This document shows positions 3,478 through 35,699 of a DNA stretch of 64,000 nt, one piece after another; position 1 is the stretch's first letter; each line of letters starts with the position of its first letter. The DNA comes from Zancudomyces culisetae HAW-14-8. Lineage: Eukaryota > Fungi > Kickxellomycota. Both the position numbers and the translations under genes were made by a program. The notes beneath the pieces are model-generated. The model saw only the letters and a list, made by a program, of their open reading frames with translations, had not been told where the DNA came from and searched no databases. The stretch lies in contig JBNJNM010000012.1 of the NCBI GenBank assembly GCA_052426225.1, positions 1,984,001-2,048,000 on the forward strand. The letters run 5' to 3'.

Positions 3478-5943
3478 TTTATTCTATATATCTCGTTTTT
3501 TTTTTTCGTTTTGTGCGTGTGTGTTTGTTTGTTCTCCCTTCTTATTTACTGTATTTTTCCAAGATTTAGATTCTGGATTTTATTTTATTTTTTACAAACT
3601 TTGGATAATCTATTTATAATTTTCAAGAAAATTTTGTATAATCTCAATCCCACAATCTAGATTTCATTAATATTATGTGGTTGTCTAATCTCGATTAAAT
3701 CTTCGGTATACATACCTTGTATCTTTCTATCTCTTGCTTCTAATCTCGAAGGTTCTGGATTACAGATGTGGATTATCTTAATCAAATTTGGTAAATTTGA
3801 TTATATTTTTGTTTATGCCTGTAAAAAAAAAACAAATATTTACAATACTATTTTCTTTAAGGATGGAAAAATCTGGGGGTCAACTATACCCTGTAACTTT
3901 TTTTTTTTCTTCTTTCTTTGTTAATTTGTTGTTAACAGAAAAATTAATAAATCTCAACCCCTTCCAACTAATGCTGATTTTTTTTTTTTGTAGATTTCTA
4001 CTAAAAATGAGAAAAAATGAATTGGACTTGATTTTGCTCGCAATTTTTTCACCAGAATTTGGGGGGGGGGAGGGGGAAGAGAGGAGGAGGGAGGTGGTTG
4101 ATTGTTATTGAAAATTGAGGAATCAAGGCTAAATTTTTTTTTTGTCAAGAAGAGGAGGAAAAAAAAATTTTTTTTTTGTATTCCTGTGTTTAAAAAATTA
4201 AAAGTTTTGATTTTTAGTAATTTTAAATTAATTTTAATTGTAATAATTTATATTTTGATGCAAACGAATTTTTCTTGGAGGCAATCTAAAGATTTAGGTA
4301 TTGTATTCGCCTCTAAAATATTGAAAGCTATTTGCTGGTTATTGGCCAAAACGACATTTTCTTTAGAAAAGTTCAAAAAGTAGGAACTTTTATTCCAAAG
4401 TGCTTTTGGAAGTGGGTTTTTGGTTTTTGGTATTTGCTTTTATCATTTTAAGCGAAAATTTTTTTTTAATAAATATTTATTGTTGCTCTTTCTTTTATAT
4501 ACATAGTTCATTATATATGGAATAGTGGTAGTGCGAATTGTTGTGTGTATGGAGATTCTTCAATATTTGGTGTAATTATCATTTTTGACTAAATCTGTGA
4601 TACCACAGACCAGATCGAGATATTGACAAAGATATTCGTATACATTCTTTGTGTGTTTTTGTCTTGATGTTATTTTTTTTGTCTATTCTCACTAAATAGT
4701 AAAACTTGTCGGTAAAAAAGGATGATAGTATATAACCTTTTTGAACGTTGAGGGTGTCCCAAGGGCAAACCGATACTTTAGCAGTCCCCATACTGCACAT
4801 AATTAGTCTCACTTTATCAGGGTATATTTACACCTTTTTGGAACAATATTTATATATACAAAGTATAAGTAGAGATAAATACGTATTGGAAAAAGTAGAA
4901 AAAAAACTAATGGTACATTAATGCAAGCCCAATAATGTTGATGGGGTGGGTGTTTAATTTTTTATTATATTTTTGTTTTTGTTTAGGCTTTGAAACCTAA
5001 ATGTACAAAAGGTACAAGAAAATTAATAGTCAACAGACTTACAAGGATAATTAGCAAGAGAGTTTTGTTTTTTTTCTAGTTTTTTTCTGAATTAAAAATA
5101 TTGAGGAAAAACCAATGGCAAGTCTACAAACAGAAATTAAAATTAATAAAGTTTCATATTTGGCAACAACTGCTTATGATTTAATAATTAAAAAAAGAAT
5201 AAATAATGCATTTTGGATTCCGACTTTGAAAAATGAGTGGTTTTTGCCATGAGTAGATTAAAAAAAATAAATAAAAAATAAATAAAAAATAAATAAAAAA
5301 AGTAGTAAAAATTTTTTTTTTCTGTTGGTGAAATACTTAGCTGGCACTGAGTCCTAAAGAAACTAAAAGCATTCGCCCAATACTAGGTCAATTCCTATTC
5401 TAAACTATTCCTACTTGTGTCTTTTAATATGAAAAAAATAACAATAATAGTTACACTAAAAAAAAAGAAAAAGCAATGTTAATAGTGATAATTCTATTGT
5501 ATTTTTTTTTCCATTTATAAGGGAAATTTAAATTAATCGCTGATCAAACTTGATTATACTGCTTTATTTCAACCGCAACTTTTAGTTTTGTATAACAATA
5601 ATAAAAATACATTGATATATTATACATTAATCAAACTTTGTTAAAAAAAATAATACATAAGGGATAGTGATTATAACATTCAAATCTTTTATTAACCCGG
5701 AATTGACTACAACACAAACCAAAATAAGAGAACCAGCAAAAAGAAAAAGGGGGGGAGAAATACGAAAACATACAATAATTATCCTAATAGTAATTATACC
5801 CGGAAAAGCATTTTGGTTTTTACAATTATATTTTTTTCTTTTCCCCCTCGCCTCTTATTCTTACAATTTCAAATCTATATAGTTAAGAGGCTTGGGCATA
5901 AAGAATACGATAAAGTAAAAGAAAAAGAGGAGAAACGAAAAAA

Positions 5944-8900
5944 ATGAACGAGTTGAAGAAATATTTGGACTATTTGGCCGACTATTCGTTTGATGTGGTA
6001 AGTCTTGGTATACACTACATTATACCTTATCCTGGGGAGCTAGTATATTTATTTATATTTTGTAAGAATATGAAAATAAAATAAAGGGGGGGGGTGGTGT
6101 CAAATAAAATAAACAAGGAGATTTAATAAAATGTAATGTGGTAAATAGAGAGATCAACAAATTCCTGCTGGAAGTTTCTATGGGTAAGAAAAATTCAAAC
6201 ACAATAAATGTTCTTTTTAAACTTTAAGAGTTTTAAAATATTTATTTATAAAATATTAAAAAAAACAAACAAACTACAATAATAAAATAGGCTTTTTGAT
6301 CAAGTACCTTACAAGAAAATACGAATGAGTCAGGATGTGTTTGTAAAAAAAAACAAACTGAGCACACAGGAGCGAAAAAAGACCAAAACCGCAACGATTT
6401 ATGAAGAGGCGGGAGGCGGGATAGGCGTGGCATCAAATGTTAGCACATTGTATGGTGGTATGGGAAAGGGAAGTGTGGCCCGGGGGTATTATGAATTTGT
6501 AGAGTTGGAAAAGGATACTATTGTGCGGGAAATAGTGCGATTGTATGTTGAGTGCGAGGAAAAACTACAGCATGAAACTAGCGGAATACAAGTAGACTCC
6601 CAACAGAATTATGCGGCTGGTTCGGATGATAAATATCTACGAAACTTGACAGAACTAATTATGGGAGTAACCAGGATAGATGATGGGAGTGTAATATTGG
6701 ATGGAGCATTTGAGGCACTGGAAAAGATATTTGAAATGTATTTAGATGAGCGACAACAACAAATAAAGCAAGAGCAAGGGCAAGGACAAGAAAAACAAAA
6801 AGAACAAGGGCAGGAGCAGGAGCAGGGGCAACGAAACGAAAGCAGAAAAGAAAAAATTGGCGATCTGAAAAATACTAATGGAGATGCTTCAGGGGGAGAG
6901 GCTAATTTTGATCAGATTACTGGCGATGATAAAAAATTGATGGTATCGAATTTGTGGAGAGAAAAAATGTCTAGGAGGGTATGTAGGCTGAAGAGGCTTT
7001 TTGATGCTAATCGACAAAGAAGCTGGATAAAAGCAGCGGAATTGATAAAGAAAATAATGTATAAGGCAACGGCTATATCGATACCAGCCAATAGAAGAGA
7101 GTCTGCGGACGGATACGAAAGAAAGTATTCACAGAGTGTTGTTCTGGAAGAAATCCGAGTGGTAGATGGGGAACAATTGGATTGGAGCAAAGAAAATGAA
7201 GTATCAGATGTTTCTGATGATGGTATTACCATGAATGTAGATGTAAATCTAAATGTAGATAAAGATGTAAATGTGAATATGAATATGAATATGAGTATGG
7301 ATGTCAATATGGACGTAGGTGTAACTACAAATGATGAGAAAAAACACATTAGAGAGAAAGAATTTAGAGTAGATCAAGTAGCAAAAGGGATGGTAATGAG
7401 AGAACGAGAGAGCCGAGAAATAGTGAGACACATTTGGCACGAGTTGATAGCAGCAGTTGAAAAGGATGTAGAAGCAACGGGAATGAGGTTGTTAGGGCAG
7501 GAGAAGAATAGAAAAATGATGGAAAAGGATAGAGGAAGGAGAAAGAGATATTCGATAAGGGATAGGTATTATAGAGTGATGTTTGAAAAAGCAATGGAGA
7601 TAATAGCATATTTCAAGGGGAAAGTAGCAGAGGGAAGCAAAGGGTATTCGATACCGGCATTTTCGTTGGCAGAGGAGTTGGATCCAGGAAGAGAGATAGC
7701 AGAAAGCGGAATCTTGCCATACGAGATGCAGCAGATGGTGGATACAAGTATAGCACGAAAGATCCGAATGAGAAAAATAGCATTTCCACCGGATAGTACG
7801 TGGCCAATGGTATCGCATGCTAGTCGAACGCATGCAGAAAAGCATATATATGATCATACAGGATATGCCAGTTTGCGAGATACATTACCAAAGAGAGAAT
7901 TGGAAAAGGGAACATCGGCAGATAGTTATTTGGCGGGGTTGCTATACCAACAAGCAGCTATTGACGATGTGTATAGAACTATGCGAGATCATAGAATGAT
8001 GAAAAGACGTACTGAGCGGGAGGCAGACAGAAGAAGTTATAGAGTGGTTCAGTTACAACGGGAGGCGATTGTTGGAGGTAGTATTACAACTAGCAATAGC
8101 AATAGCAATAACAATAGTGGTGGTAGTAGTGGTAGTGGTAGTGGAGGGGTAGCGGTGGCAATGGGAGTGGATAGACTTAGGGGTGATGTAAATGTGAATA
8201 TGAATGTGAACTTGGCAAACTATAACCAGAATATTGGACAACAAAAAGAAGGAGGAGAAGGAGAGAAAGGAGGAGGAGAGGAAAGAGTTAGCCTGTTACA
8301 ACAGATGGAACAAGCAGAAGATGGAAGACTTGTTTTAGATGTGTTGGTTAATAGCATTAAACTAACGGTTTCTAGATCACAAACAAGTGAACCGGGTGAA
8401 GAAGAGGTAGATATAGAAGGGGAAAATGAGATTCGAGAAAATGTAAAAGGGATGGCAAGGTTGAGTAGCATAAAAGCGAGAATTCCTGAGCGAATGGAAA
8501 AGCAGTGGGAGGCGTTTAATAAGCTTTCAGATCAATTGTACTATTTTGTGCAAGCGGATGTGATACAATATGAGGATGTACACAAAAGGTTATACCAACT
8601 AGTGGTGCCAAAGGCAGGCAAATATGGGGCAGGGCCCAAATTGGCTAAGGATAATGCACTGATATGGTTTTTGCTACAGCTTTTCCACATTGAAAAAGTG
8701 GGCAATGGGATAATTAAACATGATTTTGAGACACGCGAAAATTTGTTTGCACAATTTGTGGAAATGTATAATGAAACACAGATATATTCCAGAAAAAAGG
8801 GGTTTTATTTGCGCGACTTGTCGTTGCAAGGGATAATGAATCATCAACAAGCAAACATCCAAGATTTACAAGGAATAAAGTATCGACATCCAAAAGTTAA

Positions 8901-23830: not shown

Positions 23831-24489
23831 ATGGAGCCAGTAAGTTTATCTCTCGCTATATATATCCCTAATTTGTTTAGCTAAATGCGATTTAAATCGG
23901 TCGAGCTAGTGTACACATAAAATAAATCCAAATTGTAAAAAGAGAAGTACCTAGAATTTAAACTTGCTGGAACGTAACTACATGTGGATGACGATTTGTA
24001 CTTTGATTTAGGAAAAGCTACAGACTCAAATTAACGACTCAATAACCCGATTGTTATCCAAACCGGGGGTTGCTGGTGTAATTGTATTATCTGGCGACGG
24101 AAAAGTTATCCACAGCACATTTGATGATGAGCAGACGATTATTAGAGCCGGACATGTTAAGCAAATTATTTGTGTGGCTTCAGAAATGGTCAATACCTTG
24201 GACGAGCAGGTACAAACATTATTTTCAGCACTTTTATTTGATATACTGTTGTTTTTTATGATTTTTATAGACAACTGGTCAGAATAACAATCAAAATACT
24301 TTGATAAACAACTAGGATGAACTACGGTTAATTCGACTTCGGACCAAAAAATACGAGCTATTAGTCTGTCCAGGTAATATTACTTGATAGAATTTTACTA
24401 ATTTGATGCAAAGTATTCATACTCTTTTCGTTTTAACAATAGACAAAGAGTATTTCACGATTGCGTTTCATAACGCTTCAGACAAATAA
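23831..24489 (+). CDS. DYNLRB: Dynein light chain roadblock-type, 4 exons
   Basis: MEP|EKLQ..RLLSKPGVAGVIVL..DGKVIHST...|DELRLIRLRTKKYELLVCP|DKEYFTIAFH. Confidence 0.92.
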
Positions 24490-24843
24490 AATGAGTGAGA
24501 AGGCAGAAAGGGGGAGAGGAGAGGATATATACAAGATATTCCTATTAACTATATATAATCAGCCGTAATATATATCTCAGCTAGCACACCAACCTTTCAC
24601 TCCTCTTGCTTTTGGTAAAAACGAATCAGCAGCCGCCATTTCAGTGTAATAGTTTGTGGGTAACACTAAACATCCCAACCACACCATTTTCTAATGAGAA
24701 CACTAAGTACTCGATCTCGAGTTTTGTAATTTTTTACTTCATTTTCGCTTTAGATTTTCTTTCATTTCTTTTTATAAAAAAATATAATAAAAAAACAACA
24801 ACTAAAACTTTAAAGGCATAATAAAAAGAGAAAATATAACAAA

Positions 24844-26246
24844 TTAAGCAGCTGCACGTCTTGCAATGGAACGCTTTGTGGTTTGGGCCTGGAAACCTGT
24901 CTTAATCGCAGCTACGGATCTAGTGGAACCGCATGACTCGCACTGAACAAAGTACAGTCTATTTTCCTTAGTAAGGATGGTTTCACCAGATTTACAAGTC
25001 CTGCATGTGACATATTCCATAATATATCTACGTAGAACGTTTTCTATTTGCTTTTGTTGGAAGCGACCCTTGATGATCAAAGCACCGCTAGGATCATTGG
25101 ATCCAGATGTACCCAATTCGGCAAACAAGTATTGGATTACGTGCTCGGAAGGACGATGCATTCTCCTGCATATATCTGGAAGATTGGCAAAGATAGATTT
25201 TTTGTTTCCATCACGGACGATTTGTGGTGGTGCTATTGTGTATCTTCGTTTTTCTCCTGCCAACTCTGGATTGTTCTCTCGAAGGATTGAGTAAAACCGG
25301 CCAAGTAGCTATTAAATAATTGTAGTAATTTGTACCTTTTAGCAAGACTAGTTATTACTGTTATCTGCGCATGGTTTCGAGCACATTTTATTGCTATAAA
25401 ACATCAAAAACTATTGTAGAAACAAAAAAAGCATAGAAAATCTGAATACTTACCTCTTCAAAAGTATAATCACGGTCTGTTCCTCCCCAACTTTCTTCTG
25501 TCTTATCGTCAGTTTTGCTTTCAACTTCATTTGATCCCTCACCCAATTCGGCCTCGAAAGCTGCCATATTTTTCTTTGACTTTTTTTTCTTCTTCTTAAT
25601 AGAGCTAAGGTCCATGAAATCCTCCTCCTCAGCCTCAGCAGCTGGAGCCTCATCCTCCTCGAAGGCCTAGTATTAGTTTTTTACGAGTTAGAACATCCGT
25701 TTTTTCAAATTTTGGTTTATGAATACATCATATCAAACAATAAAAGTAATTATTAAGTGCTAATCGTTGTACCTTTGGCTTCTTTGCCTTCTTCTTTTTC
25801 TTTTTTAGTTCGGAAAATGCATCATTAAGGAATTCTAAACAATAATAGTTTCGAGAGTGGATTAATTATCTGTTTGCATTTGAAAAATAGCTAATGTATA
25901 CCAGAATGAACAGAAACACGCACAACCAAATTTTCAAAAAAATAAAATGGAAAATATAAACATAAATATAAATTAGTCTGATTTTTCAAAGATACTCACC
26001 ATCTGCGTCTTCATCTCCCTTTTGTCCATCTGCTTCGACTTCATCTTCAAACACAACCTTCTTGGTCTTTTTCTTTTTTACCAATGTTGAAAAGTCATCC
26101 TAAATTATATTGTTTAAAAGATTATATGCGTGCTCTAATTTTCTGGAGGGGAAATACTGCTTTTGAGGTTGAGAAATTTCACTTACATCTTGATGATCTT
26201 CGATTGTAGTCTTTTGTAGTCTTTCTGATATTTCGTTATCGCTCAT
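24844..26246 (-). CDS. SUI3: Translation initiation factor eIF2 beta, 5 exons
   Basis: Three lysine boxes, 'RDYTFEELL', 'FAELGTSGS', '[18 protein letters not shown]', C4 zinc finger CRTC..CESC. Confidence 0.97.
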
Positions 26247-27421: not shown

Positions 27422-27677
27422 TTATCTGATATCATTTGACATCGACGTTATCAGATGCACCCGAATATATTTTTTGGACCATTATGGTGATAAACCTGTC
27501 AATTAATATTGTAAACACGTTATTCGCAGCAATTCTGCATATCTGATATAGTACTTGTTATTATACTTTCAAACGTGGTATTTTAATCAGATAAGCTATT
27601 AACAACCCTACTTTCTACTACTTTCACATAAGGTAGAAACAAGTATGTATTAAAAGTTTTTAAAAAAAGTATATAAA
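27422..27677 (+). promoter_or_regulatory. Cluster of ATCWGATAA (SreA/Fep1-type GATA) sites plus TATA box upstream of the secreted protein at 27777
   Basis: TTATCTGAT 27422-27430, TTATCAGAT 27448-27456, ATCAGATAA 27586-27594, near-match ATCTGATAT 27541-27549; TATATAAA 27670-27677. Confidence 0.65.
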
Positions 27678-27776: not shown

Positions 27777-28463
27777 ATGAAAGCAAAGACTCTAATCTAC
27801 TTGGTACTGACACAGGCATTATCTGGTGCCTATTCCGCAAGTGTGAATGTCAATGGAGTTGAACCAGAACTTAACAAAACTATGTGGAAACTCCAAAATT
27901 CCAATTTTTTGGCAAAAAGGACACAGACTTCTGTAGGTGATGCCAATGGATATGCAAGTGGCAACGATTCTGGTGCCACTAATACTCCGACCAAAACTTT
28001 AAGCAGTACCAAGGAGATATTTGACGTTATTGGGCAGCTATACGGTGCAAAGGAGAAAAAAAGATTGCATGAAGCTTCGCTATTTAAACTCATCCACTCA
28101 AATGATGCGAATCAAGATACTCAGCAGAAAACTGAAAAGGAGAACCGCTTGAAGGATGAAATAAGAAGGGAGGATGACAGGATAGCCGAATATCAACAGA
28201 AGTTTGCTGGGATGTACAGCATACCAAATGCTGAACCAGGAACCCTGACTGAGCTTCTAAGACTCAAATCCTTGAACGATGTTTTGAATGATCTTTCACA
28301 AATTAGCACATATCTGAACGAGGAGTTGGAATTGGAATGTGGCTGTAATTCGAAAACCAGACAGAAGGCGTTTGTTGAACCCATCGAAAAGAACTTGGAG
28401 ATGACACACCGGGTAAAATCCAAAGTTCTACCAGCACTCAAAGCAAAGTTGAGAATAGCTTAG
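27777..28463 (+). CDS. Orphan secreted alpha-helical protein (paralog A, 228 aa)
   Basis: Signal peptide (..ALSGAYS/A), KR at residues 47-48, C-terminal 'YLNEELELECGC'; intronless; similar to the next gene. Confidence 0.8.
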   Translation: MKAKTLIYLVLTQALSGAYSASVNVNGVEPELNKTMWKLQNSNFLAKRTQTSVGDANGYASGNDSGATNTPTKTLSSTKEIFDVIGQLYGAKEKKRLHEASLFKLIHSNDANQDTQQKTEKENRLKDEIRREDDRIAEYQQKFAGMYSIPNAEPGTLTELLRLKSLNDVLNDLSQISTYLNEELELECGCNSKTRQKAFVEPIEKNLEMTHRVKSKVLPALKAKLRIA

Positions 28464-29142: not shown

Positions 29143-29844
29143 ATGCTAAAAGATTGTGTAATTGTGTGTGCTTTTTTGAGCTTGTTTGTGCAAGGACAAG
29201 AGTATAGCGAAGACACTATAAGTGATATTGAATATCATTTTGCAAACGTAGTTTATAGTACAGAGTATTTATACACACCTACCGATAATAGCCCAACAAT
29301 CTACCCTGAAGATGAAAACCGTGGTAATGATAGAGTAGAGCTCAGAAAAAGAAATAATCAAACCATTGACATACAAACGCCACGCGATGTCTACTTGAAA
29401 ATCAAAGGGAATGGATTGCTTCAAGACGTCCTATTAAGAAAGTATAGCGAGCTGTATATTTTAAGAAATAGAAAGAGCCAACAAGCAGATAATATGGACA
29501 CTGATCGAATCAATGATTTGAGTGAAGATTTTGAATCATTGAAGCAAGAATACAATGACGTATACAATAGAATTCATAAAAATCCGTTGTGGAAAGGAAA
29601 TAATACAGAATTAATTGATTCTTTCACGAGGTACTTGAGATTACATAGCCTAATTGACAGCTTGAAGAACATAAAACTATATCTGGCTGACGAACTTGGT
29701 GTTGAGTGTGAGTGCGAGCTCGATGGTAGGAGAGATAAAATGTTGAAATATATTAATTCTAACTTGGATATGGCGCAGGAAACTGAAAAAAAATTTACTC
29801 CAGCGATTTTGGAGCTCATCAAAGAGACAGAGAGATCAGCTTGA
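29143..29844 (+). CDS. Orphan secreted alpha-helical protein (paralog B, 233 aa)
   Basis: Signal peptide (..LSLFVQG/Q), RKR at residues 68-70, 'YLADELGVECEC'; TATATAAA at 28984-28991. Confidence 0.8.
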   Translation: MLKDCVIVCAFLSLFVQGQEYSEDTISDIEYHFANVVYSTEYLYTPTDNSPTIYPEDENRGNDRVELRKRNNQTIDIQTPRDVYLKIKGNGLLQDVLLRKYSELYILRNRKSQQADNMDTDRINDLSEDFESLKQEYNDVYNRIHKNPLWKGNNTELIDSFTRYLRLHSLIDSLKNIKLYLADELGVECECELDGRRDKMLKYINSNLDMAQETEKKFTPAILELIKETERSA

Positions 29845-33400: not shown

Positions 33401-35699
33401 AAGGATACTGCTAATTCTAGTTTTGGTAAATTTAACATTTGCGGGTAATGCGGATATGGTTGTCAAAATAACAAAGCTATATACACATGAGATTTTCAAA
33501 CATGGCATCAAAAAGCCAGACCCAATATACCTAATCAAGTTAAGAAAACTCAGAAACAGTACTTTAATTCGGAAAGTAGCCAACAGCTTGCTGAAAAGTA
33601 CTATATACATTCTCAACCCAAGCGAAAGGAAGAATCTTGCTAGCAACTGGATCAAAGTTTTGGAAGTATATACAGCATCAATAATGCACTCCGGGGCGCT
33701 AAACAGATTATTGGACCATGTACCTAAGAAAGTCTCGCAGCAAATCGAGAACCCAGTAGATTTAGATCTGGAAAAGCTGGATATTGCCCTGCTGATACTA
33801 TCACACGTAGTTGATTTTCAAAAAGATACAAACACAATGTCGAACTTGGCTTGTGCAATGCAGGCAATTATCAACACCAATTTTGCACCGTGGGCCATAC
33901 TGTTGGACGACAACAAGAATAGTAAAAGCAAGTGCGAGTTATTGGAGACTATTTCTCTAGCTATAGAGTTGCTAGTATTCAAGAACTACTTGTATTTCAG
34001 ACCGTATATTGGCTCCAGAAACGTAGTTGTTGGTTTGCTTCAAATTTTGTACGCATGTAACTTCAAGCTGTATGTACTAAACGAATTGGCAAAAAACAAA
34101 CCCAGCGACATCAAAAGCATAAGCAGGAATGGCAAGTTGGACACCAATGTGACTAGTGGTGAGATTGACAACAAACGAGATGGCAGCCATGCACTTTTAA
34201 TGAGACACATTAAAAATATTGTGTACTTTGCAAAGTCCTCGCTAATAGTGATGTTAAAGCATGATTCCCAGCTAGTGATCAACACGATTTGTGAGTTTTT
34301 GCGTGGCGGTATGGATTACCAGGAAGCAACATTTTTAGTACATCTGATAATGCATCTGATATCAAAATCACCACAGCTATTGTATCCATACTTGGACAGT
34401 ATAATATCCTCAATGATAAAGTCCTTGAATTCAGAGGCACGAATCAACTTGGTTCAAGATAGCCTGTTCAACAGTGAAGTACAGAAACGTTATAGTGATA
34501 TTGTTGTCGTAGATTTTTCATTTATATCAAATTCTCGATTCAACTTTGATGGGATTGGCCAGAAACCGAGTAGTACCAGTAAAAAAGATGTCGAGACTAA
34601 TACCAACGACACTAAACCAAACCCTTCTGCTGAAAAGAAGCAAATCGAAACCAGCAACTCGACACAACCCAAGACATCCGCAAAGAGTGTGTTGCTGTTA
34701 TCAATAAAATCTGCGATCAACCGGATGGCGAGTATATTCAAATCGGTATCAACAGGATTTGCAGAGGACAGTTTTATTAGTTGTGTAGCTTTCGGTAATA
34801 ATAAGGGCTCAGTGAAAGTGTGTGATTTGGAGGGACTCACCAAGACATTTATTTTTGATACTAAAACCGAATCACTCGTTGTGTCAACCTGTTTGTCCAA
34901 AAACTGCAAGTACGTGGCGTTTTTTGCAATCTACGGGTTTAGTTTTTCGAAAAATGCTGATATTCAAAGCAATGAGTACCACGGCCTGCTAAATATTTTC
35001 AAAATAGGCAAAAAAAACTTGTCGATTCTCAACAATTTTTCTTCACTCTTCGCCAGTGGTACTGGCAGTAAAAATAGCAGCATCAATGCCGCAACGCTGA
35101 ATTACCATATCAATCTTGCCAACAAGAATCTCGGAAGGGCAGTGTGTCACGACACCAGCAAATCTGCCTCAACACCGACATCAGCCGCACATACTCCTGC
35201 TCTTTCTCAGACTCCGATTTCACGATCACCATCGCAGACACCTATGGGTACATTCGTTAACAGTGCTTATGAACGATCCTCCTCGTCATCAGTTCAAAGT
35301 CAGCATAGCCGCAGCAGCGTTATACTGATGAAACAAACGAACAACAACAATATCAACAGCATTAGTAGTGTTCATCCACTTTCTGGAAGCGGGCAGAATA
35401 ATGGTAGTAACGGCAATAGCATGGGTGTTAACCAGAATAAATATGTCGAATTCGTGCGTAAACCAGCACTGTTGTCAGATGCCGCGTCTCCTGGAAGCAA
35501 AGGTGTGGATAGTATGTCGGATGATTCAGGCGGCAAGTCAACGGTGCTGATCTCGAGCCCCATCAAATCTATGGTTGTTCCAAGCCAGTTTATAGTTTTT
35601 GAACATTCATGTGTCTACAATTTTGCGGACTTGGCGTGGATTGACGATAGATCTATCTGCTTAACCATTAACAACGCAAAATTTACCTGTTCGTTTTAG
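30478..35699 (+). CDS. WDR7/Rabconnectin-3beta-like WD40 protein, multi-exon
   Basis: N-terminal 'LAVGYLTGIIAIF' and 'PVLLLSGHKAAI', 'SGSKDCIIRIW', 'CIGKDNSVAVISL', helical middle, C-terminal WD repeats ending 'LAWIDDRSICL'. Confidence 0.7.

Follow-up and report, generated by a model that had tools for sequence, protein, structure and literature searches.

In fungi, the GATA-type repressors Fep1 and SreA carry an Fe-S/glutathione ligand on a linker of the pattern C-X5-C-X8-C-X2-C when iron is sufficient, and in this state they are bound to DNA. Zancudomyces culisetae, the organism studied here, is a fungus of the Harpellales that lives in the gut of mosquito larvae. The SreA consensus ATCWGATAA was defined in Aspergillus fumigatus (PMC2610380), and in the Aspergillus SreA regulon boxes of this sequence are found at siderophore and reductive iron-uptake genes (PMC2610380, PMC10294635). 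In the Mucorales, an in silico SreA site was noted earlier in the rfs promoter of Mucor lusitanicus (PMC9226013) and a DAP-seq study of Rhizopus microsporus included two SreA-like GATA factors (PMC12638772); these reports describe neither a regulon-wide pattern of site clusters nor an orphan secreted target (PMC9226013, PMC12638772), and a literature search found nothing on iron regulation in Harpellales.

The window, a stretch of 64 kb (G000:C12:1984001-2048000 of a 27.09-Mb, 25-contig assembly), contains five exact matches to ATCWGATAA, located at 27422(-), 27448(-), 27586(+), 34342(+) and 35967(+), while dinucleotide shuffles give an expectation of 2.38 per 64-kb window. Three of the five fall inside 173 bp and the other two are isolated, the match at 34342 lying within a 1306-aa ORF. 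Iron box 1 (27422..27430, minus strand, ATCAGATAA, exact) is situated 355 bp 5' of the ATG at 27777 of an open reading frame designated ORF A and is overlapped by a one-mismatch partner at 27424(+). Iron box 2 (27448..27456, minus strand, ATCTGATAA, exact) is 26 bp from box 1, and iron box 3 (27586..27594, plus strand, again ATCAGATAA and exact) is 183 bp 5' of the ATG and is preceded by TA (TAATCAGATAA), thereby matching the extended TWATCWGATAA preference described below for 35 sites. In addition, a degenerate palindromic site (27539..27549, ATATCTGATAT) has one mismatch on either strand, and the near-copy at 27541 (ATCTGATAT, one mismatch) is part of this near-palindrome. A TATA box (TATATAAA, 27670..27677, plus strand) was read directly about 100 bp upstream of the ATG, and this TATA box and the ATG of ORF A are the features nearest to the boxes. 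In the 5' direction, about 1 kb is without a convincing ORF, and beyond this gap come a short open frame on the minus strand and, at about 24400-25700, a gene resembling eIF2-beta. The 477-bp promoter of ORF A is single-copy in the genome and does not belong to a repeat. An earlier note on this DNA had described three exact copies within 173 bp and a near-copy at 27541, placed about 180-355 bp upstream of the ATG at 27777 and followed by a TATA box, with isolated copies elsewhere and a few expected per 64 kb; all sites were found where it had put them, the measured distance of the exact boxes to the ATG is 183-355 bp, and the only copies elsewhere in the window are the two isolated ones. The triple iron-box cluster is confirmed as a real, non-random feature.

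ORF A (27777..28463, plus strand) encodes 228 amino acids, its frame being open over 228 codons in DNA of 34% GC and its start context being A-rich. The predicted product begins with a signal-like hydrophobic segment (codons 1-21, 27777-27839) and has no other hydrophobic segment, the maximal 19-residue hydropathy after residue 25 being 0.33; the C-terminus is charged (KAKLRIA). A dibasic KR is present at residues 47-48, two N-glycosylation sequons occur, four long helices are predicted, and the only two Cys of the mature protein form a CxC (C-G-C at residues 188-190, 28338-28346). The gene had been regarded as unannotated in the earlier note, and this proved incorrect, as GenBank entry OMH86237.1 (428 aa) already covers ORF A as a hypothetical protein fused with its downstream paralog: the entry is 99% identical to residues 1-213 of ORF A and then runs into ORF B, the two being joined via a predicted intron starting near 28415. 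This fused model is probably a mis-merge and wrong, because both halves begin with a signal-like N-terminus of their own and ORF A stops at an in-frame TAG at 28461.

The downstream ORF B is a tandem paralog (29143..29844, plus strand, 233 aa) that shares the C-terminal helical CxC domain with ORF A (BLASTP E = 3e-9 over the C-terminal 66 residues), and no exact or one-mismatch iron box was found in its promoter between 27820 and 29200. A distant paralog, designated C, is encoded on another contig (G000:C15:347406-348218, minus strand; database entry OMH80705.1, 270 aa) and has its own box cluster upstream, such that two of the three family members, ORF A and paralog C, carry box clusters. Columns invariant across the three paralogs include E183, C188, C190, R195 and N206. 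ORF A had no Pfam match even at E = 10, a profile search of the PDB and a separate word search were empty, and a search of the ESM Atlas by features gave no relative. When a profile of the three paralogs was compared with 1.84 billion representative proteins, only two entries were obtained, both of them from Z. culisetae. The structural model of full-length ORF A (pLDDT 49.5) was unusable, and in a model of the domain formed by residues 75-228 (pLDDT 74.6) the chain folds into four helices, each about 30 residues long. With this domain model, Foldseek found no match in the PDB at E <= 0.001, the VIA wide fold search gave Z of 9-11, below the noise level of roughly 13 for helical models, and Atlas fold matches had TM < 0.5; none of the fold-search matches was more than a generic helical hairpin, and all were set aside as uninformative. 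Two known types of secreted iron protein were also ruled out as identities for ORF A, namely a CFEM hemophore, as no CFEM domain was detected in Pfam at E = 10 and two instead of eight mature Cys are present, and a GPI-anchored Fit-like mannoprotein, as there is neither a GPI-type C-terminus nor Ser/Thr repeats. No feature that could be recognised in the protein points to iron.

Genome-wide, 859 ATCWGATAA sites are present in 27.09 Mb. From this number, 0.013 triples within 173 bp are expected in the genome (Poisson), a value that rises to 0.065 if all DNA had the base composition of the ORF A promoter. Only the ORF A cluster and a cluster at C11:848281 have three distinct exact sites inside 175 bp, and at the FET3/FTR1 locus discussed below three sites lie within about 270 bp. 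A search for two sites at most 250 bp apart in all three relative orientations yielded 16 distinct loci, whose ORFs were scanned against Pfam. Same-strand pairs within 250 bp were seen 15 times, at 12 loci of unique sequence, compared to about 3.4 expected (Poisson). The reversed pattern, used as a control, gave 18 same-strand pairs, of which 14 belong to one dispersed repeat holding the palindrome AATAGACTATT, with most copies counted on both strands, two to a second, two-copy repeat and two to a 20-bp tandem. There was no independent unique-sequence pair among these 18, whereas the true-motif pairs are all in different, unique sequences. An argument against a regulon on the grounds that the raw counts are not above the control was for this reason dropped, the control pairs being copies of repeats.

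Single sites are not enriched in the genome (859 vs 781 for the reversed control) and neither are palindromic sites (49 vs 60 in the control), so most single sites must be non-functional and information is carried by clusters only, not by isolated sites or palindromes. Some pairs sit in coding regions or beside transposons, and hence clusters can arise without function. Neighbouring sites spaced by 24-34 bp were found at six candidate loci, against an expectation of about one in the whole genome; besides ORF A, these are the loci of the ferric reductase, FET3/FTR1, C11:848281, C11:1563682 and paralog C. When 35 sites from the candidate loci were oriented by strand, position -2 was T in 25 and position -1 was A or T in 33, and the resulting preferred extended site, TWATCWGATAA, is half of an inverted GATAA repeat. 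Among WGATAA elements, 28 of 42 (67%) were ATC-extended in the cluster promoters and 7 of 299 (2-3%) in the background, a comparison that is partly circular because the loci were picked by the motif; it shows that cluster promoters are not simply GATA-dense regions. The dispersed repeat of the control set, bounded by AATAGACTATT, at least 250 bp long and for the most part no further than about 60 kb from a contig end (G000:C8:38922, C8:55986, C8:2111022, C9:62723, C12:2493765, C13:2028024, C16:61913 and C21:34853), looks like a subtelomeric element.

The densest cluster in the genome, with nine distinct sites in 3.6 kb (C21:3301818-3305393), is located upstream of and between tandem genes for the iron permease FTR1 and a three-domain, FET3-like multicopper oxidase. 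In the six-frame search, this FTR1 (G000:C21:3303599-3305059) shows in-frame stops because introns split the gene; when its exons were read frame by frame, both REXXE motifs were present. Next in density are five co-oriented sites (C9:790411-791467) in the 1.3 kb preceding the ATG of a ferric reductase (Ferric_reduct, FAD_binding_8, NAD_binding_6). Two distinct sites each were found about 760 bp upstream of a rhizoferrin-type IucA/IucC NIS siderophore synthetase (C14:562388-562519), about 910 bp upstream of the ATG of paralog C (C15:349130-349173) and about 550 bp upstream of ISU1 (NifU_N; C12:2164037-2164125). A genome-wide scan for such clusters, suggested in the earlier note with FTR1, FET3, ferric reductase and siderophore transporter genes in mind, has placed its top hits at the FTR1/FET3 pair, at a ferric reductase and at a gene for siderophore synthesis. 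No cluster lies upstream of a second FTR1 copy or of three further genes of the reductase/NOX-like kind.

Further loci were recorded alongside. Within G000:C12:2159100-2169000, the Fe-S scaffold gene ISU1 is at 3907-4392(-) with iron boxes at 4938/4940 and 5018, and no alternative target was seen on the other side of this pair. The shut-off of iron-consuming genes during starvation is in ascomycetes usually the task of HapX or Php4 and not of the GATA repressor. Two distinct sites at C11:1563682 lie upstream of a gene for a 352-aa protein with a C-terminal DUF1636 domain (ORF 5751-6809(+) within G000:C11:1558700-1568600, with boxes at 4983/4985 and 5009, about 740 bp upstream); DUF1636 is a mainly bacterial, Cys-containing family, and the gene is a possible further regulon member. 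The three distinct sites at C11:848281-848383 form the tightest triple in the genome (103 bp; 4782, 4816 and 4874/4876 within G000:C11:843500-853400) and are without a clear target among neighbouring ORFs, being placed 3' of a STIMATE-family gene and 1.8 kb before a C2H2 zinc-finger ORF, with a CDF cation-efflux gene 3.5 kb away. The ORF and Pfam scan likewise gave no clear target for the clusters at C11:1260033, C12:2318773 and C21:2915515. Apart from C11:1260033 and C12:2318773, the remaining loci have site pairs inside coding DNA or beside transposons and are probably due to chance; Ty3/gypsy-type retrotransposon ORFs (protease, RT, RNase H, integrase) adjoin the pairs in C6:360900-370800 and C21:2910700-2920600, and these pairs are probably unrelated to iron.

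To compare the synthetase promoter between species, contigs carrying synthetase orthologs were fetched and exact sites upstream of the gene were counted, 12 kb being examined. In Furculomyces boomerangus three exact sites are located at -695, -382 and -306, in Smittium simulii two at -503 and -2579, and in Zychaea mexicana, a member of the Mucorales, two at -240 and -1111; no exact site was found upstream of the Mycoemilia scoparia synthetase in this 12-kb survey. About 0.6 sites would be expected in total across the 12 kb.

A search of the genome with PF00320 gave 14 GATA-finger matches at about 12 loci. Among them is the kind of two-finger, Cys-rich GATA factor that the earlier note had proposed to look for, an SreA-type open frame of 858 aa (G000:C15 about 727956-730530) with fingers at residues 373-397 and 584-608 and, between them, a linker at 525-543 (CPGNGSCNGKGGEPSCNGC) of the pattern C-X5-C-X8-C-X2-C. 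A heptad-like segment or coiled coil is present at its C-terminus. Residues 360-625 are 100% identical to an NCBI entry named 'Siderophore biosynthesis regulatory protein URBS1 [Zancudomyces culisetae]' and also match a Smittium ortholog and many entries named SREP, SreA, Sre1 or Sfu1. In an alignment with A. terreus SreA, Candida Sfu1 and the Smittium and Furculomyces sequences, the four linker Cys and nearby G, N and P residues are invariant. A second two-finger GATA factor (G000:C15:622408-625791, 972-aa frame) is without the Cys linker and is rich in Asn/Ser/Gly runs, with an MGMGMG tract. The CBC-binding motif of HapX/Hap4 (PF10297), a model of only 17 positions, had no match in the genome; should this absence be genuine, Z. 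culisetae would have only an incomplete version of the feedback pair that SreA and HapX form in ascomycetes. Together with the clusters at iron genes, the SreA-type factor makes an SreA-type regulon in Z. culisetae, as the earlier note had envisaged for an early-diverging fungus, well supported in silico, with ORF A as a probable member.

Other readings of the cluster have to be weighed. The boxes might be used by another GATA factor (nitrogen AreA-type, light or developmental), with ORF A answering another signal, since every ATCWGATAA holds the generic HGATAR core, which AreA/Nit2-type factors use in pairs at nitrogen-catabolic genes with no need of the ATC extension, and about 12 GATA-finger loci are available, including the second two-finger factor without the Cys linker. 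However, the genes marked in the same way are those of the iron permease and oxidase, the ferric reductase, the siderophore synthetase and ISU1 and not nitrogen genes, and the GATA elements of the clusters are overwhelmingly ATC-extended, the SreA-defined form (PMC2610380), which makes use by another factor unlikely. There is also a slim chance that functional iron boxes serve another transcript than ORF A, for instance a non-coding or divergently transcribed RNA between 26340 and 27400, and the stretch of about 1 kb upstream of the cluster without a convincing ORF would leave room for it. Against this, only 76-355 bp separate the boxes from the TATA box and the ATG of ORF A, the closest minus-strand frame that could plausibly be coding does not begin until more than 1.1 kb away, and a cluster is found, independently, upstream of paralog C as well.

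That the triple arose by chance in AT-rich DNA between genes and regulates nothing would be in line with a motif that shows no global excess and with the pairs that occur in coding DNA or near transposons, but it is highly improbable considering that just 0.013-0.065 such triples are expected in the genome and that the few comparable clusters are at canonical iron genes and a paralog. Finally, it is scarcely credible that ORF A is not a real protein-coding gene: although it has no homologs outside the species, it combines 228 open codons in 34% GC DNA with a signal-like N-terminus, a TATA box and an A-rich start context, its C-terminal domain with the invariant E...CxC...R...N pattern is shared by two paralogs, and the GenBank annotators predicted ORF A independently. 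The reading that we prefer, and consider likely, is that the ATCWGATAA triple and its degenerate copy are operators of a repressor of the SreA/Fep1/Urbs1 type that controls ORF A.

Compared with SreA of Aspergillus, the Z. culisetae system has an identical 9-bp consensus, a candidate repressor with two GATA fingers, a C-X5-C-X8-C-X2-C linker and a C-terminal coiled coil, and the same marked gene classes, that is, an ftrA/fetC-like pair, a ferric reductase and siderophore synthesis. It differs in that Zancudomyces is a gut symbiont of the Zoopagomycota, that its siderophore gene encodes an NRPS-independent IucA/IucC synthetase and not a SidA/NRPS system, and that the candidate target, ORF A, encodes an orphan protein with a predicted signal peptide. 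With Fep1 of S. pombe, Urbs1 of Ustilago and Sfu1 of Candida it has in common the invariant Cys/Gly pattern of the linker, as aligned with Candida Sfu1, and paired GATA elements upstream of iron-uptake genes, whereas its sites are often half-palindromic (TWATCWGATAA) and paired 24-34 bp apart. The likeness to the Mucorales is that of early-diverging fungi with ATCWGATAA upstream of a rhizoferrin-type synthetase, as in Zancudomyces, Furculomyces, Smittium and Zychaea. Rbt5, Pga7 and Csa2 of Candida, Fit1-3 of S. cerevisiae and Cig1 of Cryptococcus are, as the ORF A product would be, small signal-peptide proteins under an iron regulator, but no sequence, Pfam or fold relationship connects them with ORF A.

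Under the preferred reading, the 858-aa factor encoded on C15 would, as is established for Fep1 and SreA in iron sufficiency, carry an Fe-S/glutathione ligand on its linker and bind the boxes, and the bound factor would shut off the TATA-driven promoter of the ORF at 27777-28463. During iron starvation, the factor would leave the DNA and ORF A would be expressed, its product being a lineage-specific secreted helical protein with a single CxC that is probably processed by a Kex2-like protease. Because box clusters are shared with FTR1/FET3, the reductase and the synthetase, iron starvation probably induces ORF A. What we infer from these data is binding of the boxes, repression in response to iron, secretion of the product and whatever part ORF A may have in iron uptake. 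Co-regulation with uptake genes and the predicted signal peptide point to a role outside the cell when iron is limiting; a function in iron acquisition is a conjecture whose whole basis is co-regulation and secretion. The conserved E...CxC...R motif could bind a metal or be redox-active. In a bolder version, which we regard as rather doubtful, the three-member family of secreted four-helix CxC proteins would be a new extracellular iron-starvation factor, either a binder of metal, heme or ferri-siderophore or a protein whose redox-active CxC assists reductive uptake, and it would have been drawn into an SreA regulon of ancient origin.

The ORF A promoter thus probably adds one more member to a regulatory system that is already known, in a lineage that has not been studied and in front of a gene that is a true orphan. 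The cis-element and the Cys-linker repressor of the SreA/Fep1 system appear to work alike in Zoopagomycota and Ascomycota, and sharing by both lineages would place the system near the base of the terrestrial fungi. An iron regulon may in this way be read directly from the genome in a lineage without genetics, and it provides a functional handle on a true orphan, a homolog-less, predicted secreted protein that becomes a candidate for a part in living with little iron in the gut of mosquito larvae.
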